Of a stretch of 64,000 nt of DNA, positions 1-57,256 are shown piece by piece (positions within the stretch are counted from its first letter, which is position 1; each line of letters begins with the position of its first letter). The notes beneath the pieces are model-generated. The model was not told where the DNA came from. It ran no database searches and saw only the letters and a program-made list of their open reading frames with translations. Position numbers and translations under genes: made by a program. This DNA is from Oikopleura dioica. Its lineage: Eukaryota; Animalia; Chordata. Location of the stretch: assembly GCA_907165135.1 (NCBI GenBank), contig OU015568.1, positions 16,937,208 through 17,001,207 on the forward strand. Direction: 5' to 3'.

Positions 1-75
1 AGCAAAATCTCCTTTATCCCTCAAGAATTAAAAAATATCATTTTAGAAAGTTCGGTCATTGAATTGTCTTTGGAC

Positions 76-2401: not shown

Positions 2402-2765
2402 TCTACAAAATTAGCGGGTCAGCGTCTCGCTGAATAAATTCTAACTTTATTATGCGGCAGTAAAAAATTTTGCGCCAAAAGGAACTTGCAAGCGCTCTTT
2501 TCTTCTCTTCAAGAATCGCTCAGATATCGCCACAGACCTTTGAAAAGGATCCTTTGTTTACTCCGATTGGATTTACGATTTGGGGATTTATCGGTCCGGG
2601 AGTTGTTGTCGGTAAAATTTTTACTGTCACGATGGTGAAATTAAATACGGCAACTTCTCAGGAAAGAAAACGTCCAAAACCAAAACAACATATTGCCAGC
2701 TGAGCGGGATCTTTTTGTTTTGATGCTTTTCGCGCATTCTTGAAATTTGAAAATTCTGCCTTAAG

Positions 2766-6170: not shown

Positions 6171-6904
6171 GATGATTTTCGAAAAATGTTTTCAGGCCAG
6201 AAAATCACTTTTTAACTGTTAGTGCCATCTTCACCGCCGTCTCAAACCGAGTCGAACGGTATATGTATCGCTTGAAAATTCTAGAGTTTCGGGTACTTCC
6301 GGTCAGATTTACGAAATTCTAGTATTCCACTGCCGTTTTTGATACAGAAATGGTACTATGGCATATAGCATGTCAAAATGACCGCTAGAACGTGAGGAGT
6401 GCAGGGGTCTCAAAAAATAAGTACTTTTGCAAAGAAAAGTACCTAAAAAAAATTATTTTGTGATATTTTAGCACTAAAAATATCAAATTTGACGGAATTT
6501 TCGATTTAAATGTAGTTTTCTTTGTAGATTTATTTATAAGAGATAAAACTTGATTATACATCTGCTTTCTGCCCGAAAAAATTAATAATTGATATTTTTA
6601 GTGCTAAAAAATCACAAAATAATTATTTTTAGGTACTTTTCTTTGCAAAAGTACTTATTTTTTGAGACCCCTGCACTCCTCACGTTCTAGCGGTCATTTT
6701 GACATGCTATATGCCATAGTACCATTTCTGTATCAAAAACGGCAGTGGAATACTAGAATTTCGTAAATCTGACCGGAAGTACCCGAAACTCTAGAATTTT
6801 CAAGCGATACATATACCGTTCGACTCGGTTTGAGACGGCGGTGAAGATGGCACTAACAGTTAAAAAGTGATTTTTTGCTCTGAAAACATTTTTCGAAAAT
6901 CATC
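6171..6904. mobile_element. Foldback MITE, ~315-bp near-perfect TIRs, 3-bp TSD (TAG)
   Basis: 6171-~6485 is the reverse complement of ~6590-6904 with few mismatches. TAG flanks both sides (6168-6170 and 6905-6907). Confidence 0.9.
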
Positions 6905-6967
6905 TAGGGTGGAAAAATTCTCGAAGGGGTGCTGACTTGGCTCCCCAACCTGCGAAGAAAACCTGAG

Positions 6968-8766: not shown

Positions 8767-10339
8767 TTAATTTTCAGAATTCCCGTAAACGATACTCTTC
8801 ATATCTCGATACCAGTCAATTAAAATCCAGTGTTCAGATCTTCTCTCAAACATTTCGGGCTCATAAGTGTCCAGGAAGTTTAAAAGTCCAAAGATCTCTA
8901 CATCTGCGAAATTGGGCTTTTCTCCGCCGAAATAAACATTTTTCGATTTGATTTTTGCTTGATTCAAGGGATGAGAAATTCAGCTTCACGCTTCAATTAT
9001 TTGAAGAAAAAGCTTAGCAGAGCACGAAGAGAAAAGCACCCCGGGCCTAGATCGGCGATTTTCGAAGCGATTTCGTTCCAGATGCCTTCAGATTCGAAGC
9101 CCATCAGCGTTCCGTGGTCGGCCCCTTTTTCGCCGCTTTCGATTACCTTCCTGCGTCCGGATAAATAGTCTTTGTAGTTGCTTTTGCGGGCGTGGGCATA
9201 ACTTGCTAGAGTGAGATGTTTTGAGTAAAGCGGGACTTCGACGTTTTCGTAAAATTTTGAAGTGTTGCGGAAACTAAAAATCGATGATAAAGCATATGGT
9301 GACTTTGCAGTTAGGAATTTATTTTCAACAAAAATTCTTGACCCATATTATCAGTGTGACATTTATTTGCTCGTATTTGCACATGTAATTCATTTCCAGG
9401 ATGAGATTTTTTAACCTTGATCGACGGATTTTCTCTACGGCTTATTGATTCATTTTATAAATTGAAACGGAGAATTTCAAAGAAGACTTTCATGTGCGCC
9501 TATATTTGCTAGAAACTCTATTTATTCTCAAAAATAGAGCGTCACCATAAAATCTGCAGCTTCCATCTGGACAAAACAAGACAGCTGCATACTTCGCCTT
9601 TTTCATGCAATCTACCTTATGCATCTTTGGAAAATTGTAGGGACATGAAATTTACCTTTGAGAATAATCAAGATGCATTGTATGCAACAGCAGAGGCTTT
9701 AGTTCTTCATCAGCCAAAGTCCTCGCTTTGTTAGCCCTCTTCGTAATTTTATGAAATCGAAGAGTCTCTTTATCCATATCAACGTCCAATTTATCCTGAA
9801 CGGGATGAAGCGTCCAGCATCTGTTCATAACTTTTTCTTGGGTGAATAAAAACTTGTTGAGCGCACTTTCCATGGTTTGCCAAGCCACTTTTACTTTTGG
9901 AAATCGTTTCTTCAGTTCTTCTAGTGAATAAAATTCGTTGTTTCGCGCGAAGTTTTCTTGGGACTCTAGAATCGATATGGCGAGGCTGGAGCCAGAGATG
10001 TAGACCCCGTCTTCTTCCAAAACTGGGATGTCAAAGGGTGTTTTAGCATCTTAAATTCCGATAAAACTGGCTTTGAAATCAACAAAGAGAACTTACCGCA
10101 GTCAGTATCGGCAAAAATGCTCTCAATTTTGAGCGGATTGACTTCCACTCTCTCAAATGGAATATTCTTCCACCTCAGAAACGTTTCCAACGAATGGGTG
10201 TCAGGAATTCCAATGAAGCCATAAACCTTTGTTGCGCTCGTTTCTTCCTTCGCGCTGACCATGTTTTTGAAGTTTGATAAATTCCGATTCCGATGCCGGC
10301 GGATGCGAAAAGTGATCGGCATCCCATGAATCGACTCAT
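8767..10339 (-). CDS. PTGES2: Divergent prostaglandin E synthase 2-like GST-fold protein (CPFC motif absent; apparent N-terminal frame discontinuity)
   Basis: FLRWKNIPFERVEVNPL...VPVLEEDG...SSLAISIL and YFGGEKPNFADVEIFGLL...LIDWYRDM match PTGES2 N- and C-terminal segments. The CPFC position reads IPDT. Confidence 0.68.
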
Positions 10340-11144: not shown

Positions 11145-11443
11145 TTCTAAAGATCAAAAATTAACCGCTGTTTTATGAATATTAGAAGAAATAATACGAT
11201 CGATTTTTTCAGAAATGCTCAAACAGAATAACTTAAAATTTCAAGAAGGCTTAGAATTGGGATTCAAGACAAAGTTGAAGAATAAAAAAATGAACTGGAC
11301 ACAGAGTCGTCTTTTTTCGCTGAGAAAGCTTTTTTTGTGTAATGCAACTCAACAGCTCATTGCTGTTTTTAAATTAAGAAAATGAGTTAGATTAAATAGT
11401 TTTTTTTTCAAATTATTTATATAAAAAAGAAGAAACGAGGGTC

Positions 11444-24302: not shown

Positions 24303-24327
24303 CTAATTTTGGAAAAATGAAGAATGT

Positions 24328-24441
24328 AACGTAACAAAAAGGTTTTCGTTAGTATGGAACGTAACAAAAAGGTTTTCGCTAGTATGGAACGTAACAAAAA
24401 GGTTTTCGCTAGTATGGAACGTAACAAAAGGTTTTCGCTAC
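24328..24441. repeat. 30-bp tandem repeat, ~3.8 copies
   Basis: Unit AACGTAACAAAAAGGTTTTCGCTAGTATGG repeated head to tail at the host/accessory junction. Confidence 0.92.
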
Positions 24442-24899
24442 AATGTAACCGAAAAAAAGGATAGATGAAAATCTTGATTTTTCTCATTTCTTTGCATAAT
24501 TCCTAATTTGCAAAAATAGATTTTTGGAAAAAAAGAGAAAAATTCCAATTTTGTATATAAAATTCCAAAAAAAGAAAAATTAAATTATGGAAAAAAAAAC
24601 TGGGTTTTCGTAGGCCGGTAGGCCTTCTGCGCCTGCTATGTTTTTTTGCCCTAGGGAACCTGTTTATCATAGCTTAATATCTGTGTCTAATAATTCACTA
24701 TTATTCTGACACTTATTTTCCGCGTCATTTTATTACAGATAGTTGTTGACAGGCTCAGTTTTCCGCATTGTTTATCATTGTCGTATTGTCTCCGCATGTG
24801 TTCAATCTCTATTGCTTGTTGTTATTTTGTGTTTATTTTTTGTTAATGTTACCTTAGTTCTCCATTAGTGGCATGATAACTTCGATTTCACCTGCCCAT

Positions 24900-32281: not shown

Positions 32282-32485
32282 CTGAGGCGCGTCTTTTTTC
32301 CATTCTTAATAGTTATGATGATTTTCAGCCTATATTTCTGCATATATTATTGAGTTGCAGGCTTCCCAGTCATCTATTTGACACAGCATCAACGACTTTA
32401 GTTGCGTTTGTTCCCAATTTATCGTGAAACTAATGATATTTGTTATAATCTGTTTGTGTTAAGGTGATTGCCTTCGAAACGTATC

Positions 32486-32602
32486 GGGTGAGGCCCATTA
32501 GGTGTAAATCCCATTAGGTGTAAATACCCATTTAGTGTAATTTTCTAGAAGGTGTAACACACCTAATAGATATTTACACCTAATGGGTATTTACACCTAA
32601 TT
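32486..32602. repeat. Left TIR of the MULE, made of CCCATTAGGTGTAAATA-type repeats in both orientations
   Basis: Three forward units, a central TTTTCTAGAA, then about three reverse units; matches the reverse complement of 41297-41413. Confidence 0.9.
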
Positions 32603-33089
32603 GTTCAATATTTTTCAAAATTATTTTGTAAAAAAGGGATCGACACAAGCTGTCACACATTCTCGACGACCCCCCAACGAGCATTTTTTTTTGGAAAAAT
32701 ATTTTTTTTTAATTCTTTCTAAATTGCACTCAAGAAACAAAAAACATCTTTTCGAGCAATTTTCGAAGTCAAAATTTGAAAATCGCGCGCTATCGATGAG
32801 TAATCGTGACAAGCTGAAGCGTTTCGTCATTTGCGCTCAATGAATTATCATTTTTCTTTCCTTTTTCAAACGAGAAATCTTTCTGCGAAATATGTTTTCT
32901 TGCCGACGTTTATTTAGCTGAAGTTTAATCTATTTCCTGCAATTTTTTCTGATAAATTTTTATATTTAAAACTAACCCGTAGGACCTTTAATGGTACCTT
33001 TTTTGATTACAGATAGATGATCAAATGTATATTCACAAAAGAGAAGAAGAATTGAAGCTTAATGAAAACAGCCCGGCTGAAAAATGATG

Positions 33090-33930
33090 AGTCCAGGAGC
33101 AGAAGAGAGATGCTACTCCGAATCAAGAGGAAAGTTAATATTCGCAGAAAAAGGAAGACCAGTTCATCAAATCGTTGAGAATCTCCCTCGACCGCTGACT
33201 CATGAACTTGAGGTAATCTTTTAGAAGGGATTTTTGAAAATAAATTGTAAAATTCTAGCGTCGAACGCGAAATCCAGGCGGCGCTGATGACCAATTCCTC
33301 GAGAGCACGAACGTCTGTCACGAAGAACTTTCCTTCGCGGAAAATGTCGACCATTTTTGGCAAAGTTTTGAAGCCGATCCACTCGCTTTCTTGGGACCCG
33401 TTCAGCTCGCTTCTGGCGCTGAGTTCGAAGAACGCGACTTTTGTCTAAATCTGGGACTCGGATCGAGAAGAACTTGTTCAGCGACAAGTTGGAGCTTCTT
33501 GTGTTGCCTTCGTCGGATTTAGTAACTTGGGAGAGAAACTGGTCGTTTCTGAAAGCGATTCTATCGCCATTTTTAGGTAAAACTGCGCTCAATTTATGAC
33601 CAATAAACTGTTCTTTAAGCTGCGTAACCTGGACAAATGAAGGAACCTGGTGCAATTTGGAAGGCCCTGCTTTGAACGTCTGTTGGTCACATGACGATCA
33701 AAAGATCATTTTCGCCATCAAAAACAAGGCAAGTGCTCCGTCCATGTTTACGATTTCTCACCCTCATTTTAGATCTTCATCGCGTCTTTCGAAGGAATCA
33801 TGGGCCCGGACGAAGAAGCTCGCGAAATCGAAGGCTTCGAACGCGACGTCCTCCAAATGTCCTGGCATAATCAACGCCTCGCAGTTGCGGTTGAGGGGCT
33901 CAGCGATACGCTTTTGTACTCGAAAGTAAA
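33090..33930 (+). pseudogene. AAAS: Captured WD40 fragment resembling Aladin (AAAS), introns retained, premature stop
   Basis: KPIHSLSWDPFSSLLALSSKNATFV*IWD, CVTWTNEGTWCNLEGPALNVCWSHDDQKIIFAIKNK and RDVLQMSWHNQRLAVAVEG follow the AAAS repeat order as recalled. Confidence 0.62.
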
Positions 33931-34017
33931 TAACTGAATAAATCTCTGTTTCTGATTATGTTTATTTAAGAAAAAGAAGTACTGGAAAGTAAAATCTTAC
34001 AGCTGGTTCGCCAAACA

Positions 34018-35883
34018 TCAGGTACCAATCATTAATTCGCCAGTGGATATGCACGCTGCCAAATTTAGTCGTAAATTTTTGGAGCTCTCCTTGAGTTTTG
34101 TTGAATAGTTCTCCAGATTTAGGCACACGATGAAAAATAATCCATACGCCACATTAATGCCGCAGTCCATGTATTTTTGTTTTGGGCATTTTTGATATAT
34201 AGGAGCCCAGTCCTTTTCGTCTTCTTCGAATACTTCAAGAAACACTTAATTAAATTTCCAATTGCGCTTATGATACGGTTAATTAATCTAATATTTTTTG
34301 AAATTTGCCTTGATAGACATCTCCATAATCTTCGAAATTCAAAGAGTCGTAAATTGTAAATATTTTTTCCTCTCTATCCGCCTTGACAATTATCCAGTGT
34401 CCAACTCGACCAGGGATAAAGACAGGGCAAACAAATCGTTTTATTTCTGATGGATGATAACCAGTACCAGCAAAATTTTTTCCTTGAAAGACCATTTGTG
34501 AGAATTTCGTGTCTTCAAGAATAATATCATTAGTTTGGTGTTGCTGTTGGTAATGTCTCATAATGATGATAAACAAGTCCAGAATTTTGTCTTTTGTTTC
34601 TGTTCGAAGTTTGTAAAGTGGCAACAGATCTCGGACGCGAACTTCCTCCTTTTCTATTAAATTGACCAGCTGTCCTTCAGGCCATTTTTGTATATTTTTA
34701 GCGATATTTTCTGCTTCAAATGACATCTTGTAGCCATTAAACTTTTCAAACTTGAAAGTTGGAGTTTTGAACATTTTTCTATCAAGCTCGTTTTCGTAAC
34801 TCATTGCATTTTCAGATTCCTCAAGAAGAATGGAATTGGACGATTCATCGTTGTTTGTTGCTGACTTAACTTCTGTGTATTCCGCGGCTTCTTCAAGGAC
34901 ATCAATACGACGCTTTTCTTCCTTGATTTCATCTGTTTTCCTCACAAAGGCGCCGCTATGCTCGCCCATTGCTGGAAGGTTCTCTTCGTTGATTTCATGA
35001 CCAGGTGAGCCCTTTTTCTTTTTTGCGTTTTCTTCTTTCTTTTCGACCAAATTGAAATTCATTCCAGCGAGAAAAGTCTCAAACACTGGATTTCTGCGAT
35101 CCAGGTCACAAAGGAACTTGTCAAGTGCGTCTTTTGAAGAGAGTAATCTTTTTGCCTCGGTCGACGCCCCTTTTAGATCTTTTGAAGTCGATATTACAAG
35201 CTTTTTCAGCTCAGCATGGCTTATTTTTAGAGGCATGGAAGAAGACTGTCGATCCAACTTTCGATAGAATCGTTGCATAGCGTTAAATTTAACCATCCAT
35301 GTTGTACCAGTTTTTTGCGTTGTTTTTATTGGCCATTTTCCATCTTCAAGATAGCTCAACTCATCGTTAAACGTCGTTTTCTTGCGATTTGTGATCACTT
35401 TGCAAAGCTCTTGAACATCAGGCTTAGACTGCAGACCGCGCAAGAGTCGTGCATTTACACTCTCGCTTAATCTTGGTTCATCGTTGATTTCAAAAGTTAA
35501 TTGATATTTTAGAAACGAGTCAAGCTGTTGTTGTCGCTGGTCATGAAGCTGATGAGAAGCGCTGCTCAATTCGAATAAAAATAGAGAGACCGTGGTCGAA
35601 ATCATGGAGAAAAATTTAGGTAAAAAATGATCAAACCAAGCCTGGCGTTATTAGTGCTATCGATTTCCCCAGTTTTGATCATATTGGATGATTTATCGGC
35701 CCATTCACTAGGCTTGAATGTGGCGTCTTCGTTGAAATAGTTCTTGAGGAGGTAGTCGCGATAAGCAATCCATCCATTCTTCTTTTTCTTCTTTTCGCCG
35801 TCATCAACATCCACCTTTTCTTTCGCGTTTTCGTCATCATCAACATCCACCTCTTTTTTCGCGTTTTCGTCATCAACATCCAT
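34018..35883 (-). CDS. Ulp1/C48 SUMO-type cysteine protease (element-encoded)
   Basis: 440-aa ORF ending FVCPVFIPGRVGHWIIVKADREEKIFTIYDSLN, plus a last exon CPKQKYMDCGINV, giving the His-Asp-Cys triad and the oxyanion Gln. Confidence 0.85.
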
Positions 35884-36077
35884 CGACTCAACAGCATTAC
35901 CGTCGATTTCAAGATTTTTTTGGCACTCTTCTGTGATGATTTCGATGAAAACAGCCCGAAATTCATCTTGTCCAACAGGGAAATAAGGCGCAGAATACAG
36001 ACAATTCCTTATTGATTTTATAAAATGAAATTAACTGACTTTCACAATACTAATCCCCCTTTTAGAAACCCTCAACG

Positions 36078-36750
36078 ATGATCAATAGATCAGAACAAAA
36101 AGCTCAATCAAAAGGAAATGTTGAACATGATCCGTCACGGAGCGAGAAAGATCTTCGCTGGCGAATGCACAGGAGCTCTCGATGTCAATCTGAACATCGA
36201 GGAAGTCCTCAAAGCCGGAGAAAAGAAAACGGAGGAACTTGCGGCCGAATTTGACAGTATGGGCTTGTTTGAATCTTCAATTTGCTAGATTTCTTTTAGA
36301 AATTGGTAAGAACGCGGCGCAAAAGTTCACCTTAGACGAAAACACCGATCACACTTGTCATGTTTGGAACGGCGTCGACTTCCGAGACGAGAAGAAAAAA
36401 GAGAGCAAGTTGATCGATGTCTGGATCGAGCCTCCAAAGCGAGAGCGAAAGGCAAACTATGCTGTTGATTAGTATTACAAGGAAGCTCCCCGTGTCAAGT
36501 AAGCCCTCTTCATGCTTCTTTAGTCCTTACAACATGTTTTAGCGATCCCAAAGCGCCAAAAGCACCTCTTCCGCCAAAACAACTGGACATCAAAGACTTT
36601 CAGTTCTATCCCCACGAACTGATTCCTTTTTTTGCGACAAGAAGTCCTGGCCTATCGAAAGCAAGTCAACTACAAAGTCTCTATCGATCCAGACGCCGAG
36701 CATCCTAAGAAAAAACAGAAAGCGGAGCAGGAGAAAATCGACGAATCCCT
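36078..36750 (+). pseudogene. SMARCA5: Captured ISWI (SMARCA5/SMARCA1) fragment, post-ATPase linker and HAND region
   Basis: KEMLNMIRHGARKIFA...KAGEKKTEEL, WIEPPKRERKANYAVD*YYKEA, PKAPKAPLPPKQLDIKDFQFYP, EVLAYRKQVNYKV...KAEQEKIDE; contains a nonsense codon and a frameshift. Confidence 0.9.
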
Positions 36751-36756
36751 CGGGAA

Positions 36757-37450
36757 AATCCCTCGAGCATCTCGCAAATCGCTTCGTTACCAAGGCCAGA
36801 AACCGTCCAGAAACTATCTGCATCCTTGGAAATCTGTTCTCGTACAATGAGCGGCGCGACAAAGCAACGACATATTTCTCGCGCGCTGTGCAAATCTGCG
36901 ATTCCGATTTCACTATGCTTTCCACTTGTTGGGACACGAGTATGTTCTGAAGGAAGAAAACGACAGCGCAATCAAGTGCTTCAAGAACGCAATAAAGCAC
37001 AAGGCGAGATTTGTCAATGCGTTGACGAGCATTGGTGATGTTTTCATCAATGCAGAGAAGTACGACCTTGCAGAGAGTTATTTATTAACAGGTTGAGAAA
37101 TTTACAACTGAATCTTAATAAGAACTGTTTTCTAGCGCTGAGATACTATCCAAAGAACGCTACTGTTTGGTTATACATGGGGCAGATTCGCCACAAGAAA
37201 GGAGAACTGAATAAAGCTCTCCAATGCTTCAATAAAGTACCAAAGCTGACAAATTCTAGCCTCATGTAATACCTTTGTTTCTAGGCGCTGCAGTTCGATC
37301 CAACACAAGCGAACGCGCTCTTCATGAAAGCAAACATGTATTATAATCTCGGCGACTATCGGAAATCGCTCAACGAGTTGATACATCTCGACAAGATTCA
37401 CCCCAAACTGGGGCGAAACCATCATTTGAGGCATACCATCATTTGGGGCA
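36757..37450 (+). pseudogene. CDC27: Captured CDC27/APC3 C-terminal TPR fragment
   Basis: [84 protein letters not shown]; frameshifted, introns retained. Confidence 0.85.
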
Positions 37451-37659
37451 GAAATATCTCGGCAACAAGCATATGCAAATTGCTAATCAGCTCGATCCAA
37501 AAGGAAATCACTAGCAAAAAGGTAAAGCTCTTGATGTTTTCCATGTTTCAATTGAAAATTTCAGCTCACGATTCATTAGAACTGGCAGACATTGCCAATT
37601 ATGAGCGGGATCAATCGATGGAATCTTCAATTTCTGTAACTCCGACGGCGAATGATAAA

Positions 37660-38030
37660 ATGATAAGAACTTACGACGACAATTCCGCGCTAGCAACTAC
37701 TAGTCCACGACTCGAGTTAACACCTTTATCTGCACGATGCCGATGCGCTTGGAGGAATCAGATCCAGCTCAACCTTTCCGACTTTACTCAACGAGCGTAT
37801 GGCACTAACTACATCGAAACTCTCCGAGTTCAGGTAAAATTTAAACAGTCAGTCAGGGACACTGAGTCAGGGCCTGAAAGCCTGGAATTTCCCACCTATT
37901 CTTAAGTCATCACAATAAATCTCTTTTTCAGATCCACGCTAATTGCCGAATCCGTCGCGTTTACTTCTTCGACCAGCTTTATTCCGAAGACGAGCTTCCC
38001 GCCGAATTCAAGCTCTACCACCTGGAATCT
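37660..38030 (+). pseudogene. CFAP20: Captured CFAP20 (BUG22/GTL3) C-terminal fragment
   Basis: [55 protein letters not shown]|[29 protein letters not shown], near-identical to CFAP20 apart from a nonsense codon and a small deletion. Confidence 0.93.
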
Positions 38031-38422
38031 CTTGAAAACATAACCGCACGAGCTGAGCAAAACTACAAGTCCTTTATTAAGTCAACCAAGAGCGCAAACT
38101 AGCAACAAAAAAAAATCAAGTTCATCGATACTATTTGCCAAGGTACGAAAATACGTCAGAATTTGATTTTGTGGACGATTTTTAATTGATTTCAAATAAT
38201 ACCCATTCTAAGCGCACAGTTATCAATACACACCTCCAATGAAGACCAAAAGCGCCTGTGTATTCTTCATTTTGAAGCTCAGTCAGAAAAAATTCATCTT
38301 CCGCAGAAGATTTGCCCGAATGGCAACCGAAACCTCAAGCGAGTCGGACAGCGGAAACTTATCTACAAATCAGCTGATGCTAAAAGATCAAAGGTAAAAT
38401 AGCAAATGTTAGCAATCTCATT

Positions 38423-40268
38423 TTATAAAACCTTCCTGATGACTTGTGTCCGTTCTTCCTCCCAAGCCTTCAAGAGGCCTTCCTGTCCTGCCCGGCGTTT
38501 CCAGGATTGATACAAGTGGAAGGAACACTTTATATGAATAACGCCGGGCAGGACAGTTTTGTGAGCAGAGATAAAGGATTTCTCCCAGTCACTGCACACA
38601 TAGCGAAGATTAGGGAGCCCATTCGTTTGGCTTTTGAAGAATGCCCATAACGCTTCATATGTTTCCGCTTTGTGATCTTTGAGGAGACAAGTCATTCGGT
38701 CAACGCAATAACCCTTGACAGGTTTTTTTAACGCACCGTCGATTTTTGATGATTACCCCGAAAACAAAAGCCCGAATAAGCGACACCAAGCGACTTAAAT
38801 AAAAAAAACCCGACCTTGAATTTGTTCGATTGATCGCGGCAAGGTTCGGTTACCATCACAAGTTGTGGCCACTGTTTTTTGACGGCACTCACGACACTCA
38901 TTATTCCATCTTTTCGAGTTTCATATTTTTTTTTCAGATCACGAGCGAACTCACAAACAACCTGTCTCATCTACAACAACAACAACTCAACTGTACTCAA
39001 TAAAGGTAAAAAACTCTTCCTATATTGAGACTTGATGCATATTCACTTCGGCGAGCGTCATGGTCCAAAAAAAACACTATATTGTGGCGCGTGAAATCGT
39101 TGCTAAGGGAAGGGAGTCGTGAATCCGCCCACCATCGTTGAAACATATATAAGAAGTGGCATTTTGTCGGCACAATTTGTTTTTCCTTGGCAGCGACATT
39201 TGAGTTTTTAAATCGAAGCGCCGCTTTTTTGGCATTCTTTTTGGCATTTCCACCGAAAATTCGATTTGAAATTTCACTGTCAACGACTTCATCTTGCAAC
39301 AATTCAAGCATTTTTCTCGAAGTCCGGGGCTGTGATTCAAGCTCGTTTCGACGGAATCTGTAAACCACATATCTTTTCCAACAATCAATCAGTGCATTCA
39401 AATGACCACCAAAGCCACAAACTTCAAACGCCACATGAGATTTTCTTGGATCGTAGATTATAAAGTTTTCAACATCGTAAAATTCTTTCGATTTGTAATC
39501 AGAATTTCGTACAAGCACCGATATTTTCGCTTTACAGTTAGATGTTTCCAGATTCTTTCGAACGTGGTGGTTTTGACAGTTGAGATTCATTCTTTTCCAT
39601 CCTTTTTAACAGATCTCAAAATGATAATTTTTGATTTCAGCGCACGAAAAAACCGTCACAATTCCAGCATTTTGGCAAGCAACAGTGCCAAAGCGATGTC
39701 CACAACATGATTTACTCGATTGAGAAGCGTTTTAGGTAAGTTAATGCCCTAAAGATGCATGCCGTATATATTAAAGGGTAAATCATTCTATTTGACCTGC
39801 TCCTGGATATTTTGCTGCTAGTTCTTTTGGAAGATCTTGAAAATCGTCTTTATTGCGCGGAGTATATGAGAACAATTCATTAGGTCCAAAGCAAATAAAG
39901 AAAATGAAATTGACCATGCTTGTTGCCAATTGAACTGATATCAACTATTTAGTGCTCTCAAGATTTCAATTTGATGATGAAGAGTTCTCCGCGAAAGGGT
40001 TGCTCATTTCTGACCGAGGCTACTTGGAAGTTTATCCTTACGACAAATTGCAAGGTAATTCAATTATTAATAAAGAGCACTTTTCCTTTGGATCGGTACT
40101 GGTAGAATCATCGATGATTTCTTGAGTTTCAATCATCGTTGGGGGACGTTCAGGCGTAAGCAAGTCTTTGAGCTCAAGTTTAGCTTTTGGCGCTTTCTTA
40201 ACCATGTCGCTGACTTCTTTTGTTAATTCCAAATCCTCATTCTTTTCATCATCCTTTTTACGCTTCAT
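38423..40268 (-). CDS. MULE (MuDR-family) transposase, multi-exon; C-terminal catalytic Glu exon not found
   Basis: KIDGALKKPVKGY...CLLKDHKAETYEALW...YVCSDWEKSFISAHKTVLPGVIHIKCSFHLYQSWKRR shows the first two acidic residues and the CxxH motif. Upstream exons at 38800-39590 and probably 40038-40268. Confidence 0.8.
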
Positions 40269-40438
40269 TTTTATCTCTAATAATAAGTAGACTCCTGCTG
40301 AAAATCGAGAAGTAAATGTTCAATTTTTATGAAAATATCTGTAGACTTAAGTTCTAGAAGCACTAGAATTCAAATTCATATAGTCAATATAATTGTATAA
40401 CAGTGTTTTAAGCAAAACGACAACGCAGCTGCAAATGG

Positions 40439-40939
40439 ATGAAGATCTCAATGAATACGAAAGTACCAGCTCCGAAAGCAGACCTCAACCTCAAAGATTC
40501 GATGGCATATCTTGAGAAATACTACAAGTCCTCCTCAGCAGCTACAGCGATTTCTTTTTTCACAAAGAGCGAGAAACTGACACAGAACTCCCGACCACTT
40601 CTGCTCACCATGCTTAGTCACAAAGAAAACGACGCGATCGTGATTTAGTGCCTGAAATTGCTCCAATTTGGCTGCGTCACTTCAGAACTACTACGACCTT
40701 TGTACAGTATTGTGCGCACGTCAAAATGTAAAGATGTCGTTAACGAGTCGATGATTATCCTGTCGCAGCTTAACTCGGAAAAGTCGATTGCAACTATTGG
40801 CTCGTTAGGATTCATTCATGAGATTTGTCTCTTCATCGAAAAGTACAAATCAGGTACTGTCCTACTTCGTGACGAATTTCCTTCTATTGTCAATTATTTA
40901 GAGAGGGAAGTATTCAAAAACTGTGTAAAGGCATTATGA
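40439..40939 (+). pseudogene. Divergently oriented helical (ARM/HEAT-like?) ORF in the MULE, split by a stop
   Basis: ORFs 40439-40648 and 40658-40939 are in one frame separated by TAG (NDAIVI*CLKLLQFG); Leu-rich helical pattern. Confidence 0.35.
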
Positions 40940-41413
40940 TCGGCTTGTATAAACGAATCAAACGCAGAGCTCGCTTCCAAAGAAAAAGTTCGATGAAAAA
41001 GGTTTTGATGGAGCAAGTAAATTCAAGTCTGATGCTTTGGTTCCTGCAGAAGTCGTTTCTTTTTATAAAAATAAAGAGGCTTCAAGGACTATATTATCAA
41101 AGAGCTTCCTTCTTGACCGGTTTTATTGAGAATCTCTTTTATTCGTATTATTTATATTCAGGCAGATCAAGGTTTTTTTTCTTGTTTTTCTTTGTATTTT
41201 CTCGTCAGCAGTCGGATTTCGCAGTGTTTTTTCGATCGAAAGAAATGAATTCGGCAACAATTTACACCAAATGTCCCAAAACAAAGAATTTTCACCCAAT
41301 AGGTGTAAGTTCCCATTAGGTGTAAATATCCATTAGGTGTGTTACACCTTCTAGAAAATTACACCTAATGGAATTTACACCTAATGGGTATTTACACCTA
41401 ATGGGCCCTACTC

Positions 41414-42705
41414 AAACGTATCTGGTATTCCTTCGCAATTTTCGCTTGATATTGCTGCCGTTCCACCAATCCATGCAAATATTTCTCGTAGTTCTGTCTT
41501 ACTCACAGCTTTTCTCAGATGAGGTAGCCCTTCTTTCGCATTTGACTTGTCCAATTTGTTGCATAAATTGTATGTGATTACGTGCAGAACTTCTGAATTT
41601 TCATTATGTATAGTTCCAAATTTCACTTTTTACCTTTCACGTAAAAAGAGCAAAGATCTAAACGACCAAATGTGCTGTGACGAAAAACTCTACACTTCCT
41701 ACAATGTTGAAGGTGGCTGTCTACGCTGCATTTTCGGGTCGGTGTATCAAAATGACCCTAAATTGATTTCTTGTATGGTCGAATTCGAGCTGTACCTGGA
41801 GGTTCAGAGTTAATTCTTCGATTATAGCTTCTTTTGCCGTTGTCAAGTGCCATTCCGATATCATATCTGTTTCTTCTTTTAATGTTTTTCTCATTGATTC
41901 CGTCATTCGAAATCCAAAGGTTCGTCGGTAATTTTCGCATTTTGCTGCTCTGAAATTTTTTATATTTATTGGTTCGTTAAACCTACTTTGACAAAACAGC
42001 ATTCATCGGCCATTTTGCAATTGGGAGGTTATGGCTCTTGTAGTTGTAACTGTGTTTACTTATAAGCGTCGCATACTTGTCACTGCTTTGATTTTGAAGT
42101 AAAAGACTGAATTTTTGATTAACGGATCGCCCGCAGAGGGTGACAGTAGAGGACGAAGGGAGGACTGTGCCACCACCGTACCTCATAAATATTTTGCCAT
42201 TCACGTCGGTGTCCACATCCATCAACTCCCATATGTTTTTTTTTACAGTGTATGGCAAGCTTGGCAACAATGATGGACCCGTTTGGTTTGCCGCGGCAGT
42301 ATACTGATAAGTTTCATATTTTCCGAAGAGCTCACGAAAATTTGCTAGTGCCCTTTTAATTGCCGCGGAAGAAGTAAATTGCTAAAAATATTATTATCCC
42401 TAAATAACTTTTCATTAACTTACCTTGAATTCTAATGTCGGCGGCAAAACGTTATGAAGAAGCTCACAAAGTACAATGTCATGACTTTTTACACGGCTTG
42501 CTTAAATTTTTCACATTTTCAATTAACTGTTACTCTTACTGTAAACTGCCCATTTCGCGTATTTTTTTGCGAGTTTTTCACTATTCTCCACTCTGAGAAA
42601 ATAACCCCACGGCCGCATGTTATTAACGCTCCAAAATGCTACATTGTCTGCTTCCTTTGATAACCAATTTGCGACGGTTTTTTTAAACCGGATGGACTCA
42701 TCCAT
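41414..42705 (-). CDS. Orphan multi-exon gene whose exon runs through the MULE target site
   Basis: Five exons splice in frame via GT-AG (MDESIRFKK...; QFTSSAAIKR...; AAKCENYRR...; GHFDTPTRKC...; EVLHVITYNL...GIPDTF). The codons DTF are the TSD. Confidence 0.6.
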
Positions 42706-48172: not shown

Positions 48173-51100
48173 CTATTCATCTAGTAGAAGGTATTTTTTG
48201 CTGCATTTCGTTGGAAAGTCGACGGATAGGGATACCGTGTACTCTTTGTTGTTTTGTTTGAGCCGAAACGTTCTGAAAAGTGGGACTTCCGCGACTTTAT
48301 GCTTCGTTACTGCTTGTTCAACCGGATTGCGGAACATTCCGAATACTCTAACCGCAAACGTTCGAAGGATGCATTCCGCGTCATGAGCATTCCATCCTTT
48401 ATACCCGAGGTATGTAGTGAATTTGTTCGGAGTATTGTGGAGGAAAGTACAGTTTTCGATCTTCATAATCTCTGAAATGAAATTGTTTTAAGTTCAAAAT
48501 CAAAAAGGTAAAAATGTCACCTTTTTCGTATTTATGCATTTCTGCCGTTTCGAATTTGCTTCTTGCCTCTTCTAAAAATTGGTCTCCGCGGTTGGGGTTG
48601 CGATCGCTTGTCGCGTATTCTTCGACGAGTTTGAATAATTCGTCTTTCACGTCTTTGTTTGCTCTGCAGTCCGACCGCGTACAGAAAGGTATTTTACATC
48701 CTAAAATTACATTTATACATAGCTAAATTATGAGTTAAGTGAGCGTTAATGCTTGGTTTTTTGTTACCTTTTGTTGATCTTTTAATGAGGGTCACGGGAA
48801 ATATTTCTCCGAGATACTCTTCAAAGGTCGAATTTTCGTGGTGGAGATCGAGCACGAGCGCTTTAAGATGTCTTATCATGGTTATGATTTTTGATAATTC
48901 TGTTCATATTTTGATTAAAAGATAACCGATCCTGTAAAATTCTTTCTTTCCGAGTGTCTCTTCGTGAAAGCATTTGATGTTGTTATTCAGAAGTTTCTTT
49001 CTATAAAAGATATTTAAACTTTAGTTCTACTGTTAAAGTGATGAATCCTTCGATGTAATTACCTAAGATCGTGTGCTCGCGACATTATTTCGTTTTCCGG
49101 CTGATACAACCCGATAGTTGGGTTACCGTCTCTCATCCAATCCATGAATCTATTGTAAACCGCACGTGCTCCTTCTTCAGTTATGTTGTTGAGAAGAAAG
49201 GGATCTTCGCTCGGCGCAAGTTCTGCTGGAAGTGGCAGTTGTACGTCTTCAACTAAAGGAAGGTTTGCGTAGTCGTAGCCGCCTCTGTTGTACAACGGGT
49301 CCATTGCCGCGATAATCATTGTGTAATGATAAAACAACTTATTAAGGTTCGCTTATAACCATGTTATGATTGGTTAATTTGTTAAATTTATCTGTATTGA
49401 TTAGTTTGATGAACCTTTCCGTTATTTCATCCATGGAGATCGACGAAATATCAACGCTCACATCGCCTGAAGCCGGTATGTAATAAGCTCGGATATTGAA
49501 TTTTTCCAAGAGCGCGATGCATACTCCGACTTCGTCTGCGTAGTCTTTGAATTCTTGTGAGTTCTTGTCCGCATACTTTACGAGAGGTGACCACCACACT
49601 CGTGTGAATTTGCCCACAGTTGGGAAAATAGGGTGAAGTGATGCCTGCATTGTTTCCGCCAAATGATGTTTTCTAAATGAGCATGAATGTTTCCAAAAAG
49701 TTGTTCTGTTGTCCAGCATTCCGATTCCAAGTTTTTCTAATCTGTTGTGATCTGATTTGTGTTTAAATAAATAATGATTATTACCCGCAAAATAAATCTC
49801 TTGTTAATTAGCCGCGGCAAACTTAACATATTATTTAAACATTTCCTTGTCTTCGCCAGCATCGCGTTGAGGCATGTTCGAAAGCATATCGATGATTTCC
49901 GTGAAGTGCATTTCTGTACAATCGTTCGGCCATCGCTTTGAATGCTCCGATTCTATTTATTTTAAATAACTTGTTTTTATTTTTTGCATACCTTCCAATT
50001 ATGCCGAAACTGATTGCATTATTTGCGAAGTGGCATTTTCCCGATGTTTGACATTTGGCAGACATACAATGAGTGTTTTGGTAAGAAGCTCGTCCTAACA
50101 TTGCGTTCGACTCGCAGTATAAAACCGGGACGAATCTATTCCATAAGAATTGAGCAATTTCCGCGTCGTATCTTGTGTGTTTGTTTAGGTAATAGACAAA
50201 CATCACAATCTAAAATTTGTAAGCTAAAAAGTAGTTGATTGTAAAGCTTACATTTTTCGCATTTTGATAATCCTTTTTAGGATCTTCGTCTTCGCTTTCG
50301 ATATTGGAGATTATAACTGCGAAGTCCAGCTGCTCTCTCTCCCATGCCGAGTCGATTTCGTGGTGAAGTGCATTTTTTTCCCATAGTGCTGGAGCAACTC
50401 CTTTCACCGTCATTGGTTGTTTAAGCGCGTCAGCTTCTCTTGGATTTGCTCGAAGATATGTTTCAAGGGCTTGGGCGAAATGTTCAAACGTGACATCTTC
50501 TTGTTTCAGTAGATTCTTAATTCCGTCCGAGATTTCTCTTATTGAAGAGTAGAACACGCGGATGGCCGATTCGATATCTTGCGTAAGTGGTCCGCGAACA
50601 CCGTTGATCGTATGCTTGTCTGCCGCTTCAACTAGCTGTCCAATGTCGTAAAATATTCCGTGGAGGTATTTCGTAGCTACTGTTGTAGCTGTAGGTACCA
50701 TATGATCCTTCTCGTAGAGACTAAAAAAAAAATTGATAATACACTTTTCTTCGGCCGGAGGCCTATAGCTTACCGTTGACAGGCTTTTATAACAGTTCCA
50801 AGTCGCCCGTTTTTGAAAGGAACGTTCAAACTTGTAATTGGGTTGTCCGAAATATTCATGATCGATGCTGGTCCTGGTTCAATAACGCGTTGAAACCCTT
50901 ATTATGTTATTGTTGTAATTTTTCTTATGTTTACCTCTGTATTTATCGGTCGTCGGTCGGTCTCTTGTTCTTTCAGGCAATCTTCTTCCTGAGTTTATCG
51001 TGGTTCCATAGCGAATCGCATCGTTTTCTGAGCTATTCATGCTCGATCCACTTGAGTCGCTTGGTCCGCTTGAATCGCTTGATGCTATCATTGCAGCATT

Positions 51101-53705
51101 TAAGTCTACTCCGTCTTCTTGTAGATTAACACCCTCGGCTATACCGTCAAACGGGGGATTTTCTTGCTCGTCGTTGGGTGGTTGCTGCTCATTTTGGTTT
51201 TCGCTTGGTGGCAGGTTTTCGTTGTCTGCTGCTGGTTGGTCGATGTTCGCTGGTGGTTGTTCAATGTCAGCTGGTGGTTGTTCAACGTTAGCTGGTGGTT
51301 GTTCAACGTCAGCTGGTGGTTGGTCAATGTTCGCTGGTGGTTGTTCGTCGTTCGCTGGTGGTTGTTCGTCGTTCGGTGCCGATTGTCCTTCTTGGTTCTG
51401 GTGGTGATCCGATAAATTGTTTCCTATGTCGTTGGTGTTCGCATTTTCGTTGGCTTGTTCGGTATTTCTAGTTGTTCCGGTGGCGTTGTTTTGATTTTCG
51501 ACTTGGGTATTGCCACTGTTTTGGCCGTTTCCGTCGTCTTGAGTATTCGCCTGAAGGGGGTACGTGACCGATTCGTCGATAATAAGTGCGTCGTCGTCGC
51601 TATCCACTTGAGGTACTTGACTTTCACCGTCACTATCGTATTCCGCGTTATTGGCGAAGCCGATGTACGCTTCGATCGGCAAATCGTCAAGGTCTTCTTG
51701 TTGCCTTGTTTGATTAAAATCGTTTCGCGTCTCTGTGCTGGATCTTTTCGGCATTTTTGATGGATTAGCCGATTGTGATGCCGTTGATGCCACTATAAAT
51801 GCTTTTTATTTTTTTTATAAATTTATACTTTGATTACCTCTTTCCCTTTTTTTTGACCTTATTGTCAAATCAAGAGGTTGAAGTGACGGTACTCTGGAAT
51901 TCGTTGGCATCTGGAAATCAAACTGAGCCATTTGGTGCAAATGAACTGCAGGGTGACTTGTAGTCAGGCTCGTTGTTGGCTGTTGAGTTTGGGTGGTATT
52001 ATCTTCCGTTAGATCAACAACTGGTATAGCCGCACGTTTGTTTCGTCTTATGTCGGCTGGGCTTGGTTTGTCTTCGGCCGGAGTTACCGTGGAGGAGACT
52101 GCGCTTATTGTCGCTGCTGCTCCAATGTCGACAATTTGTTTCGTTTTACCGGAGTACGTTTTCCGCATAGTTGTAAGGAATGCTCCCAAACTTTTGCTGT
52201 AATCAGGGCCGTGTCTTTTCTTGACTTTCTCAATCAGATTTCTGAATGTCGAATAGCTTCTCGTGTTGAATTTTCTTCCATGGACGATAATTCCCGCTTT
52301 TCCGAGAGCATCCGCGACAGAATCTTTTGTGGATTAATAACAAGTGACAACCATTTATATGTATCATAATATTTAATAATCATTCCTGATGCCGTGTTAA
52401 GGTGCGTAATTAAGCACTCCCGCATTGGTGAATTTTGTCGACCATAAAAGGCGCCGAACGCAGTACCAAGGCAGGCTATATCTAGATCGCTTGGCTTCGT
52501 TTTCAATTGCGCGTGTACCAATCGCAACCCGTTGATGAGTTTCTTTGTTGCGCCGATTTTTTTGCTTTGGATCGCCGCATCAGCTCCGCGAATCGTGTCT
52601 CGAAGTCTTAAATTTTGTCATTTTATTTTTATTGGTATTTAATTGCTAATTTTTCAACACTTACATTTTTTCAAGATTTGTTGATCGCAGAATTTCATTG
52701 ATTTTAGCCGTCTCATTCGGCTTAATGCAGCACATTGCGAGCATGAAGTCGAGAAATGCATTAATCGCCAAGTACTGGTTGTCCCGGATCACTTTGACTT
52801 TTTCCGCGGACAGTTTGCTCGGTGTCATTGCAAGCAAATTCCGCGTGTACATCGACGTCGAATAAGTCACGGCCTCCGTTGTGTAAGAGTTAAGCAGAGC
52901 GATGAGTACTCGACTTCCTTCATTTACTTTTTGATGTTACCAAATATTTTTTACACACCCGAGTGATTAGTGCCTCGTTTTCCTTTTGGGATAAGTGGTT
53001 TGATTTTGATTATTCTAGATTCAATTCTAACAATTCCTTGGATGCTTTTCATCTCCTCGCTGTCAGTGTTGATGATTGCCGCCTCTTTTGTAACCGTTAC
53101 AAAAAACTGAATAAAACTTTTATTTGATTTATATATTAATGTTGTCCTGACCTTTTTAATAATGAGAATGAACTCATATGTTCCCGCGTATTGGACATGT
53201 GGTTTAGCTGTTTTACGAGCTGCTGAGTAGACCGGCAATTGATCAAGTTCATCAAGGCGCCGTTGGTTTTCAGCTTCATTTACAGAAAAAACCGTTCTGA
53301 GAATCTCTTCACTTTCCTTCGACCGCGTTACTCGTTGATCAGCTGCCGAGAATCGTTGAAATCCTGTTGCCGAAACTAATGGCAGGCTTCTTTATATTAA
53401 ACAAATCGTTCTTGTATCACTATTATTTTAAAACATAATTTTGTTTATTTGAAATTGTTTAATTTTCCTTCTTTTTTCATTAGCCTTGTTGATTCCATTG
53501 TTTGATGGTTCAGGGTTGCTTTGTGCCGCGTCCTAATTGTAATTTTGTGCTCTAATTTAATAAATTTTGTTTTACCTTTCCGTGTCCGGCCAGAATTTCT
53601 GCGTAGGTTCTTGCCATGGTAAAGAATTCGCAAACGTGTGTCTGCGTCGTGTCCAGAAGTTGAACTGATTTCACTTTCATTAAATTCCCAATATCGAAAA
53701 CACAT
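48173..53705 (-). CDS. Large orphan multi-exon protein with SIM-like (VVDLT) and CtBP-type (PLDLT) motifs and an acidic heptapeptide repeat
   Basis: In-frame splices: KKRERG|VASTAS, ACQR|LYEKDHMVPT, and a GA-AG intron 52324-52385 restoring SG|DSVADALG. VVDLT at 52007-52021, PLDLT at 51863-51877. A possible lesion near 53290 is unresolved. Confidence 0.55.
51178..51375 (-). repeat. 21-bp coding tandem repeat (N/D-x-E/D-QPPA)
   Basis: NDEQPPA NDEQPPA NIDQPPA DVEQPPA NVEQPPA DIEQPPA NIDQPAA in ORF 50879-51793. Confidence 0.9.
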
Positions 53706-54120: not shown

Positions 54121-57100
54121 TTACAATCTCGATTTACTTCGCTGTCCGTACAGGCAGCGAACAAATCCCGAAATAATAAGTAACTGCGTTTCATTGTAAT
54201 TCCACTTCTTCATTCTCGCAATGAATCGCAAATTGGACATATTCGCAGGGAAGTTTTTGCTCGCGTCTTTCAAGTTTTGCGCGATCTCCGTTATTTTTTC
54301 TGCTTTATGTCACAACTAAGTCTTTGTTGTTATTCGAATTATTGCTGATTACATTATTAATTCTGACATTCCTGCTGTCAAATCGCCGAGACCAAAATCT
54401 TCCAGCTGTATGGGTTTACCACATGCTATGACTTCCGACATGATGCCGGCGATTCGGTCGTGCGTGGCGTGTTCTTTCAGCGCGATTTGCTCGATGGTTT
54501 CTCCATCAAGGTAGCGTTTGTAAATCATCCAGCTGCGCAATCGCAGTTCTTCGTGAGCTTTATTCAGATTTTAACTAGTCGGCTGGTTTTTACTTACGTT
54601 TTTTTTGCGCCCAGGTTTTTGGTGGGTTTTTCATCATTTCATAGGTAGCGTCTTCTTCCTCGTAGATTTGTCTATCTACCTCAAGCTCTGGGCAAAGATT
54701 CTTGTATTTTGCTGTGTTCAGATAGAAACTCTGGTACATTTTGGCCGCCGCTGCTGTCATTCTTGGAATTTTACACACTAAATAAGTTTTATTTTTTTTT
54801 CTTCTAGGGACGCTACTTGATTCTTCCGTTGTGGGCCGCCATAATATAACTCGTTCCAATAGCTCTCTGCTGAAAGGAAGTTGCGGCTTTTTACGATCTT
54901 TGTATTGCTGCGTCACATCCTCCATAATTGCGTACATCATCTTTCGATATGATCTTTCATACGCGTCCTCCTTTTTTTTCTGTGGCTCTTCAGCTCTGAA
55001 GATTTCTATCTTGCCGAACACTGCGTTCTCTTCTTCCTTCTGTGCCTTCAGTTCGCCTTCTGTTTCCATGATACAGTCGCGGCTTCCTTTAGAAATTATT
55101 CTTGGCGTTTTCATCTCAGTTGTCAGCACTTTTTGTATTTGTTATAAGCAGTTTCAAGATTGACTTACCCGTGATGAATTTTTTTTTGGGCGACTGCATA
55201 AAATCGTACCCCTTTAGCGACACAACCATTCGAATCGCTCCTTCTCCATCATAATGCCGAAGATTGAGGTAGTCATTAATGATGAGCGCCCTTGTAACCG
55301 CATAAAAGTGTTTTTTCTATAAAGTCGGTTTATCAAGTTAACTTTTTTTAGACATACCGGTTTCATTTTCTTTAGGACATTAGCCATTGTTGCTTTTTCC
55401 TTGCAATCAATAACCGCCTCCATTATGATTATTGCGTCGTTTCTGAGAGAAACATAGTGTTTCAACTCAGCTTTATATTCTTATCAAGGATAAAATAGCT
55501 CGATTCTTTATTTTGGTATTTTATGTTAATTCTTCATTATCTATATTCCCTTTACTTTGTTCCGCGACAATTCTTCATTCTCCCGACGGCAATGATCGCA
55601 GCAGTTTGGAAGGCCCGTTGTTTCAGACTCTTCTCCTCTATTGAATGTCGCCAGTAGGGTTTCTCGGAGACAACCTCGCTGTTTCAATGCGTATTCGCAA
55701 TGAAATAATTCCAAGTATTTTTGTATCTTCTCTTCCGTTCTAGGTTGTCTACTCGCGGTTGACTTGTGAAAAGAAGTAAGCTCATCATTCATAAATATGA
55801 TCGTTTGAGATTGTTCTCCGTTTCGTCCGCATCGTCCGCTCATTTGACTGAGCGATGAGAGTGATAAAGGTGTTCCCCAAAGAACTGAATTTTAAATTTG
55901 GTTTTAGGTGAATATGTTTACCCGTCTTTCGCAATGTCCGATCATCATGACCCATGCCGAACGCAACGGTTGCGATTATCGCGTCAAGTTTGCCTTGCGT
56001 GAAATCTTTGACCGTTTGCCTTCTTTGTGCATCATTTACCCGCGGCGCATTCTTTGCAGAATCATTCTTCGACGATCTTAAAGAAAAATAAAACAAAATT
56101 AATAATTTATATAGTACCCGAAGTATTTTCCGAATCTTTGCATGTCGAAAAATCGGCTAAGATTATCGTATAGAAATTCGCCTTCATTTCTCACATTGAT
56201 GTATATGAGAACTCGTTCCTTTAGCCGATAGAGCTGTCGGTTGCTGAATTACCGTTTTGTAAGAATTTATCGTTATATTATACTTGATTATTTTGTCGGG
56301 TTTAACAAGTCCAGCTCTCTTCAAATCATTAAACAAGGCCTCTGCCGATGCTTGTTTTGAGTTGTTTCTTGCCGCATTTGTCTTCGTTAGAATTCTGTAG
56401 TAGATATTCTTTCGGTCAGTTGCGCCTTTTATTATCTTGGGCTAAATTATTTTATTTATTTGCTTCAACTCAAGTTTATCTTACTTGTGTCATCCGCAAT
56501 GTCTTCTTGATCCCTCTTTCGACGTGTTTTGTAGCTGTGGCAGTACACGCTAGAAATGGTGCACTCGCTATTTCTCTAGCAAAACCGAGAAATTTCATCT
56601 CAGTTCTGAACGAGCTCCACTCAATGCATGTATGCACTAAATAAAGTTAATGTTAATTACTGTCCCGAAGAGTAGATTTACCCTCGTCAAAGATAGCCGC
56701 TTTCATGGGGTGATGTTCGTTGAGAAGCTGGAGCACAAGATGGTTTTTGTTCAAGCTTTCAGGAGATGCAAAGATGACGCGATAGTTTCGTAGCCTCTTC
56801 CACTCTTTTATGGCCGCCCATTCAAGAAAATTTGTGTCTCTCAATTTAGTTTGGCTGATTCCAGAGTGATCCAGAAACGTCATCATGTCTTCGCGAATGT
56901 TGTTAACCGGAAGAACAATCAACGTATATCCTGTTTGTTGCAGAGCCGCGTAGGTGAGAAATACTGCAGATTTTCCGCTTCCTGTGCACTGTACTATCAA
57001 AGTATCTTTTCCCGCACCCAATGCTTCGATCGCTTCATACTGCCAGCTCCGCATATTTTGGTGGCCCATCACTTCTTTAAATGTTTTCTTGACGATTTTG

Positions 57101-57183
57101 TATTGTTCTTCTGCGGTTAATAATGGATCCCCGAAAAAAACTTCTGGAGCTTCGTTCGACTCATTCGACCGATTTTCGTTCAT
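54121..57183 (-). CDS. WRN-like RecQ helicase (helicase core, Zn/RQC, HRDC-like, C-terminal HTH; no exonuclease domain)
   Basis: GHQNMRSWQYEAI, QCTGSGKS, ASPE, DE|VHTCIEWSSFR, ACTATAT, VLIYINVR, IIATVAFGMG, QMSGRCGRNG, CLRETLLATF...CCDHC, RALIINDYL...SLKG, RPTT, YLDGETIEQIA...GKPIQLEDFGL. The exons I could trace splice in frame. Confidence 0.85.
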
Positions 57184-57256
57184 TCTTAATGTGAAAATGA
57201 TTTTATAATTTGTTTCCAATCAATCAGTCATTCTGTCAATGTTCTCTCCAATTCCA

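Follow-up and report, generated by a model that had tools for sequence, protein, structure and literature searches.

The window analysed here is a 64,000-nucleotide stretch of the PAR chromosome of Oikopleura dioica OKI2018_I69 (Okinawa lineage; GCA_907165135.1, OU015568.1; record coordinate = window coordinate + 16,937,207). Within it, a Mutator-like element (MULE) spans positions 32486-41413. On its minus strand the element carries a gene for a transposase that reads on into a probable Ulp1-like protease, and on its plus strand it carries broken, intron-containing pieces of host genes, identified as SMARCA5, CDC27, CFAP20 and, probably, AAAS. The first three of these form a single 2.4-kb block that is inserted in a transposase exon.

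The limits of the element were read directly from the sequence. A perfect 9-bp target-site duplication (TSD), AAACGTATC, abuts both termini, with the left copy at 32477-32485 and the identical right copy at 41414-41422; its length lies within the 8-11 bp used as a criterion for Mutator TSDs. The left terminal inverted repeat (TIR; 32486-32610, plus strand) and the right TIR (41284-41413, minus strand, delimited by inverted-repeat alignment to the left end) align over ~117-125 nt at ~89% identity, long TIRs of about 100 bp or more being another criterion for Mutator elements. Each TIR contains a 16-nt subrepeat in both orientations. Nine copies of this unit (with at most two mismatches) were found in the window, all of them at the two ends of the element, where 0.02 would be expected by chance. 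When folded by itself, the left TIR forms a hairpin (-34 kcal/mol, z = -9), and the right TIR contains the same internal inverted repeat. The element is a well-delimited DNA transposon of the Mutator superfamily. An earlier note on this DNA had described TIRs of ~117 bp and an identical TSD at these positions, and both were recovered here. In metagenomes, neither the doubled TIR subrepeat nor the reconstructed empty site was matched (0 in each scan).

The transposase gene and its probable Ulp1-like part

The exon model of the minus-strand gene was built using a diverged paralogue on chromosome 1 (locus L002) as a guide. The core of the MULE domain was located in an exon at 38713-38434, by a minus-strand Pfam MULE match at 38426-38752 (E=1.2e-5; score 26.1 bits, cut-off 27.6), by alignment to the chromosome 1 paralogue and by the exon model. 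This exon includes the second Asp ('CSDWE') and a C-x2-H motif. Upstream of it lie two exons, 39601-39015 and 38970-38758, with a GT-AG intron of 44 nt between them, and further upstream the putative first two exons with intron 1 (39797-40268, ATG at 40268). The intron between the upstream exons and the domain core (38714-38757) is 44 nt long with GG-AG borders, unless a G run in the assembly is in error.

On the other side of the 2.4-kb block the gene continues with an exon at 36030-35642, reading 'YFPVG...WADKS...STNN', which aligns to residues 81-156 of the paralogue's open reading frame (ORF) at 9180-9662. A putative 170-nt GC-AG intron (35472-35641) joins this exon to a large exon at 35471-34309, in which the model and the relatives P0121, P0122 and P0123 delineate the transposase Glu motif ('SES.N') and, beyond a linker, two Ulp1-like boxes, His (GHW) and Asp (YDSL). 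Lastly, a 64-nt GC-AG intron (34245-34308) precedes the final exon (34244-34021), which holds the Ulp1-like Gln...Asp-Cys-Gly box and the stop codon and gave a colinear tblastx match to the paralogue. Four putative introns of the transposon gene and the cargo (34245-34308, 35472-35641, 38714-38757 and ~33731-33770) have GC-AG or GG-AG borders instead of GT-AG. Non-canonical introns are frequent in O. dioica.

The spliced model shows three of the motifs of Mutator transposases, namely the second Asp, C-x2-H and the 'STNN..SES.N' Glu motif, and further towards the C-terminus Ulp1-like His, Asp, Gln and Cys (DCG) boxes in that order. The reading frame is free of stops over 359 codons in the 39601-38434 part and 592 codons in the 36030-34021 part, at least 951 codons in total, with the cargo block as the sole interruption. 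An Ulp1 domain was not called in the window pieces by either Pfam or PDB sequence search. A second paralogue in the same genome (locus L003) matches Peptidase_C48 in Pfam at E=0.0069, and a profile made of three sequences returned CE-clan proteases (ChlaDub2, SENP1) as all of its top ten PDB matches, the best values being 0.018 for ChlaDub2 and 0.23 for SENP1. As judged from these sequence comparisons, the C-terminal part is likely to be an Ulp1-like protease. In hydra and lancelet, Mutator transposases repeatedly carry Ulp1 as an accessory domain (PMC2836005), and it is not counted here as cargo.

Other queries with parts of the gene were negative: a homology search with a 440-aa ORF (covering proteins of 0.55-1.75 times its length) gave zero matches, exact look-up of a 197-aa transposase ORF returned no record, and a 202-aa N-terminal transposase ORF matched nothing in Pfam or PDB searches. 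Between the transposase start and the right end lies a segment rich in plus-strand ORFs (40412-41283); Pfam and PDB searches with the ORFs of 40412-41316 gave no match.

Host gene fragments and the 2.4-kb block

The host fragments were identified by protein and domain matches. Retained introns were called where protein homology is interrupted by a gap with G[TC]-AG borders, and lesions were read in all three frames. The SMARCA5 (ISWI) fragment occupies 36026-36752 on the plus strand and matches residues 691-745 of human SMARCA5 (E=1.4e-7). It begins in the 3' end of an intron, includes the HAND domain as two colinear pieces in different reading frames, and retains two introns of ~44 nt each. 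It is broken by a TAG at 36470-36472 and by a frameshift in a T7 run at 36627-36633. The CDC27 (APC3) fragment follows at 36753-37658 on the same strand and runs from the region of tetratricopeptide repeats (TPR) to the C-terminal tail, with matches to TPR domains and to residues 589-657 of human CDC27 (E=2.5e-13). About four introns are retained. The fragment is damaged by a 17-nt tandem duplication at 37418-37451, as well as by a 1-nt frameshift at ~36905 and by a TAG codon at 37512-37514. The CFAP20 fragment (37659-38102, plus strand) begins near residue 98 and reaches the natural stop codon, with matches to the CFA20 domain at E=5e-12 and 7e-8. It retains a 98-nt intron and carries a TAG at 37701-37703 and a multi-base deletion with a frameshift at ~37745. 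Downstream of its stop, 317 nt of DNA were carried along (38103-38419, plus strand; read directly, with no Pfam match), and a neighbouring gene may have its first exon there (38239-38397, with GT at its end). These three identities are firm as sequence matches.

A further plus-strand fragment, probably of AAAS (aladin), lies at 33251-33925, 3' of the Ulp1 stop codon and antisense to Ulp1. It was recognised by matches to Xenopus Aaas (6.4e-3) and to Pfam Beta-prop_Aladin (8.8e-4). A TAA at 33446-33448 interrupts its frame, and it appears to retain the GC-AG intron at ~33731-33770. The retained introns of the cargo are ~44-98 nt long, sizes that fit the 49-nt median intron of the Okinawan O. dioica genome (PMC8008620). 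A search for the O. dioica CFAP20 parent by way of a chimeric 206-aa ORF revealed none recognisable among the 120 listed of 699 CFAP20 proteins.

Two further candidates were set aside. TOP3A was considered as a fifth fragment: 27 residues, antisense at ~39973-40053, in or next to transposase intron 1, gave weak scores (Pfam 0.031, PDB 0.036) that were unconfirmed. A 9-nt repeat on either side of the AAAS region (32908 and 33960) was discarded, its chance expectation being about 2/3 by our own estimate.

The position of the SMARCA5-CDC27-CFAP20 block was established by comparison with the chromosome 1 paralogue, where a single ORF (9180-9662) contains both the C-x2-H motif and the corresponding 'YFPLG...WADIS' stretch. 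The two are separated in the window by 2.4 kb, which the block occupies. An 11-bp direct repeat, ATTTTATAAAA, flanks the block and was read at the block boundaries at 36015-36025 (left copy) and 38420-38430 (right copy), each copy at most 5 nt from the point at which homology breaks. Some common 11-mer occurred anywhere in the two boundary zones in 3% of shuffles. Short direct repeats also mark the internal joints: a 9-nt repeat, AATCCCTCG, at 36744 and 36757 at the SMARCA5/CDC27 junction, and a tandem 8-nt repeat, AATGATAA, at 37651 and 37659 at the CDC27/CFAP20 junction. These are two of only ~9 local direct repeats of at least 8 nt in the element outside the TIRs. No canonical GT-AG pair that would excise the block in frame was found, and only a non-canonical GA-AG pair fits, so that removal of the block by splicing would be conceivable through that pair.

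The 11-bp repeat, of a size that fits a MULE-type duplication, could also be read as the TSD of a nested mobile element (a Helitron or a second Pack-type TIR element) that arrived preloaded with the three fragments. Such an element would also account for a cargo more decayed than its carrier, as expected if the cargo was already old on arrival. The block, however, runs directly into SMARCA5 intron DNA on the left and into post-CFAP20 DNA on the right, and no terminal repeats, TIRs or other transposon ends were found at its boundaries. A Helitron was specifically rejected: neither strand shows a 5' TC, a 3' CTRR, a 3' hairpin or an A|T target, and an 11-bp duplication is present. We therefore regard a nested element as very unlikely.

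A highly improbable explanation is that chimeric long reads fused real gene pieces with a real transposon, so that the cargo would not exist in the animal. The OKI2018_I69 assembly was made from Nanopore reads with Illumina polishing, its authors estimating an error of 1.3% (PMC8008620), and a perfect 1161-nt palindrome in the chromosome 1 locus, described below, looks artefactual. A chimera of functional genes, on the other hand, would not be expected to contain stop substitutions, a 17-nt tandem duplication and a multi-base deletion, which unlike homopolymer frameshifts are unlikely to be assembly errors. Short direct repeats at the junctions and an 11-bp duplication of transposase sequence around the block also argue against such a fusion, as do the full-length gene models annotated in the surrounding 22.6 kb of host genes.

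The cargo and the transposase gene differ in their state of decay. No stops were found in the 951 transposase-Ulp1 codons, against at least 5 in the ~765 cargo codons supported by homology (Fisher p=0.017), and the cargo also carries indels. It is possible that selection on the transposase persisted once the cargo had been captured, in which case the block would have to be spliced out, that the cargo was already old on arrival, or that the contrast arose by chance. The same contrast bears on the view that the element is a classical Pack-MULE, in which the transposase ORFs would be decayed remnants of a non-autonomous element mobilised in trans, and cargo would have been gained between the ends. 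The TIRs, the TSD and the host fragments all fit this view, as do the break in the transposase exon made by the block, the one-base frame offset that persists after virtual excision, and the failure to find the first catalytic Asp. Preservation of 951 stop-free codons would nevertheless be unexpected in a long-dead coding region next to a cargo with this many stops, and the remaining transposase introns are short, consistent with the genome. A classical Pack-MULE is thus unlikely.

These results refine several claims of the earlier note. Its intron-retaining fragments of SMARCA5, CDC27 and CFAP20 were borne out by the protein and domain matches, AAAS being probable only. Its wording 'all on the plus strand and all with stops or frameshifts' applies to the four host fragments, and not to the transposase and Ulp1 parts, which lie on the minus strand and are free of stops. 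The MULE transposase exons that it described were supported by the slightly sub-threshold Pfam match and by the motifs other than the first catalytic Asp; for its Ulp1 protease the boxes are present, with no Pfam or PDB call on the window copy. Its label 'Pack-MULE-like' holds insofar as a MULE carries unrelated host fragments, and fails in the strict sense because a transposase-Ulp1 frame of at least 951 stop-free codons is retained. Three of the four fragments form one block within a transposase exon, flanked by an 11-bp repeat, and this block looks like the outcome of a repair or filler-DNA event and not like cargo between stripped ends. Lastly, the suggestion that the element moved recently, after its cargo had begun to decay, does not follow from the perfect 9-bp TSD alone. 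By a rough estimate, 4-5 stops in ~2 kb correspond to ~5% neutral divergence of the cargo, at which 18 unchanged bases would be expected about 1/3 of the time; a perfect TSD is therefore no proof of movement after decay.

Relatives and genomic setting

An exhaustive HMMER search with the 454-aa ORF of the gene revealed three weak relatives only, two of them from the same genome: chr1.g3204 (L002) and YSR.g17053 (L003). The search returned no self-hit, and the ORF is therefore not an annotated protein anywhere. The third relative, L004, is a 1306-bp sequence from an unrelated public read set (Logan ERR13954067), with a 223-aa ORF at 31% identity to the linker region of the transposase-Ulp1 gene. 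Relatives of this transposase-Ulp1 family therefore exist outside the OKI2018_I69 assembly.

The chromosome 1 locus contains a colinear transposase-Ulp1 gene at 30-40% identity, enclosed by its own subrepeat-bearing ends. Inside these ends, and antisense to the transposase, lie a fragment of a SMARCC-type SWIRM-associated domain (E=4.7e-10) and a Sec61alpha/SecY fragment (E=2.5e-15). Since this second, diverged MULE carries other host fragments, capture was not a one-off in this genome. In both elements all identified fragments are antisense to the transposase; counted as 4-6 independent events, this gave a sign-test p of about 0.06-0.02 by our own estimate. In the window element, the presence of intron-retaining, broken host fragments inside a MULE indicates that capture occurred at the DNA level. 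The proposal of the earlier note that DNA-level capture took place in this chordate genome is supported by these introns and by the chromosome 1 element.

The Sec61alpha fragment coincides with positions 12474-13217 of the chromosome 1 locus, which are annotated as a 160-aa 'SecY' gene and are actually transposon-borne; gene annotation can be misled by such elements. Inside the right end of the same locus, at 14136-16501, lies a perfect inverted duplication with 1161-nt arms that are 100% complementary and separated by a 44-nt spacer. The L003 locus, Y-specific, holds a remnant of the Ulp1 part and, as judged from ORF translations only, is dense with other mobile elements (1-5166 and 11274-17588), among them, on opposite strands, a gypsy-type gag-pol (minus) and a long set of ORFs resembling those of retroelements (plus).

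Elsewhere in the window, a host ORF of 494 aa (14909-16390, minus strand) showed 99% identity to Oidioi.mRNA.OKI2018_I69.PAR.g13214 and 88% identity to the orthologue of Bergen O. dioica. The assembly locus of the former protein agrees at 100% with window positions 3757-26390, which places the window on the PAR chromosome. About 740 bp at 6167-6907 match their own reverse complement at 91.6%, forming a long palindrome or foldback, and a smaller foldback lies at ~24321-24460. Two minus-strand ORFs were noted from their translations only, one with tandem 'EQPPAN'-type peptide repeats (50879-51793) and one resembling the N-terminus of a RecQ-like helicase (56653-57219). As background to this setting, 44% of the repeats of this O. 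dioica genome are unclassified (PMC8008620).

Origin of the cargo and comparison with known systems

Taken together, the locus is probably best explained as a MULE that encodes a DDE transposase and has transduplicated host cargo, placed at its site by cut-and-paste, in which the block arose from break repair. Cut-and-paste insertion would have generated the 9-bp TSD, and host genomic DNA would have been copied into the element at least twice. In one event, the block from three unlinked loci (SMARCA5, CDC27, and CFAP20 with its downstream DNA) would have been laid into the poorly conserved linker of a transposase exon, leaving the 11-bp target duplication around the block and the 8-9-nt direct repeats at its internal joints. 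In the other, the probable AAAS piece would have entered the interval that separates the left end from the Ulp1 stop. Most likely, a double-strand break arose in the element and was mended by filler DNA or gap filling, with repair synthesis jumping between templates at microhomologies; the initiating break was perhaps the excision footprint of another element with a long target duplication. With the transposase frame otherwise intact, either the block would be removed as an intron or the element would rely on transposase supplied in trans. The cargo itself, antisense to the transposase, is presumably non-functional.

Several observations weigh against this explanation. The MULE match falls slightly below the curated Pfam cut-off, and the first catalytic Asp was not identified in the exon model, a Glu aligning there with 'DG' of the paralogue. 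Virtual excision of the block leaves the two transposase parts one base out of register, in a T/A run. One copy of the element was seen, with no second copy within the 64-kb window, and the relatives amount to two diverged ones among the annotated proteins of the genome and one in an unrelated read assembly. A TSD was looked for at the chromosome 1 locus and none was recognisable; the 1161-nt palindrome there may stem from a foldback insertion of very recent date or from faulty Nanopore assembly. The AAAS identity comes from one ORF piece, searches with the other pieces of that region having given no match. Capture boundaries, divergence and microhomology were deduced from the element side and not from the parental loci. 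Lastly, single-base frameshifts in homopolymers are unsafe given the Nanopore basis of the assembly.

A bolder view, which we hold to be distinctly unlikely, is that this is a still-functional, Ulp1-bearing Mutator lineage that repeatedly gains pieces of essential genes, always antisense, the largest being tolerated as a new, spliced transposase intron. If so, antisense transcripts or small RNAs directed at SMARCA5, CDC27, CFAP20 and AAAS would arise from a source that can move. With its target duplication and junction repeats preserved, the element would in addition document filler-DNA repair as it occurs in nature.

Mutator gene-fragment capture has shaped plant genomes, and the genome of O. 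dioica is among the smallest and most transposon-poor animal genomes known. The element described here is a clear example of multi-gene capture in a chordate with a genome under extreme pressure towards small size. It also offers handles on the mechanism of capture, in the form of an exon-internal block, an 11-bp flanking duplication, repeats at the joints and a paralogous exon free of the cargo.

Of the systems to which it may be compared, filler DNA is known in plants from Ac/Ds and Mu excision and from break repair, where ectopic copies are inserted, short repeats lie at the joints and duplicated target bases are kept. Unlike plant filler DNA, the block is kilobases long and derives from three loci, and its initiating break is one that we infer. 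The plant Pack-MULEs of rice and other species (Jiang et al. 2004; reviewed in PMC5861414 and PMC13317346) resemble the present element in their Mutator-type TIRs, 9-bp TSD and internal, intron-containing fragments of unrelated host genes, set head to tail and mostly non-coding. They lack a transposase, whereas this element keeps a long transposase-Ulp1 frame, has its main cargo inside a transposase exon and resides in a tunicate.

MuDR-type or Mutator transposons with Ulp1 are known from hydra and lancelet (PMC2836005). Like these, and like KI-MULE and the other Ulp1-bearing MULEs of Arabidopsis, melon and rice, the element would encode an Ulp1-like C48 protease of the CE clan. Here the protease reads, in the predicted spliced gene, as a C-terminal continuation of the transposase, and in contrast to the known Ulp1-MULEs it is too diverged for a Pfam call on the window copy. 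Host fragments in animal Ulp1-MULEs are not discussed in that work (PMC2836005).

Among animals, Tan et al. (2021) reported 370 Pack-TIRs in 100 reference genomes and no Pack-MULE apart from the Drosophila Ssk-FB4 family, which they argued to be MULE-like with 9-10-bp duplications (PMC8277862). For single-copy Pack-TIRs they favoured gap filling, the captured segments having a median length of 224 bp (PMC8277862), and the 11-bp flanking repeat and the junction repeats described here fit this class of mechanism. Similar to Pack-TIRs and Ssk-FB4, the present element is an animal TIR transposon that captured host DNA, with gap filling or template switching as the proposed origin. Unlike the Pack-TIRs, it carries 2.4 kb from three genes together with a further fragment, and it still encodes a transposase.

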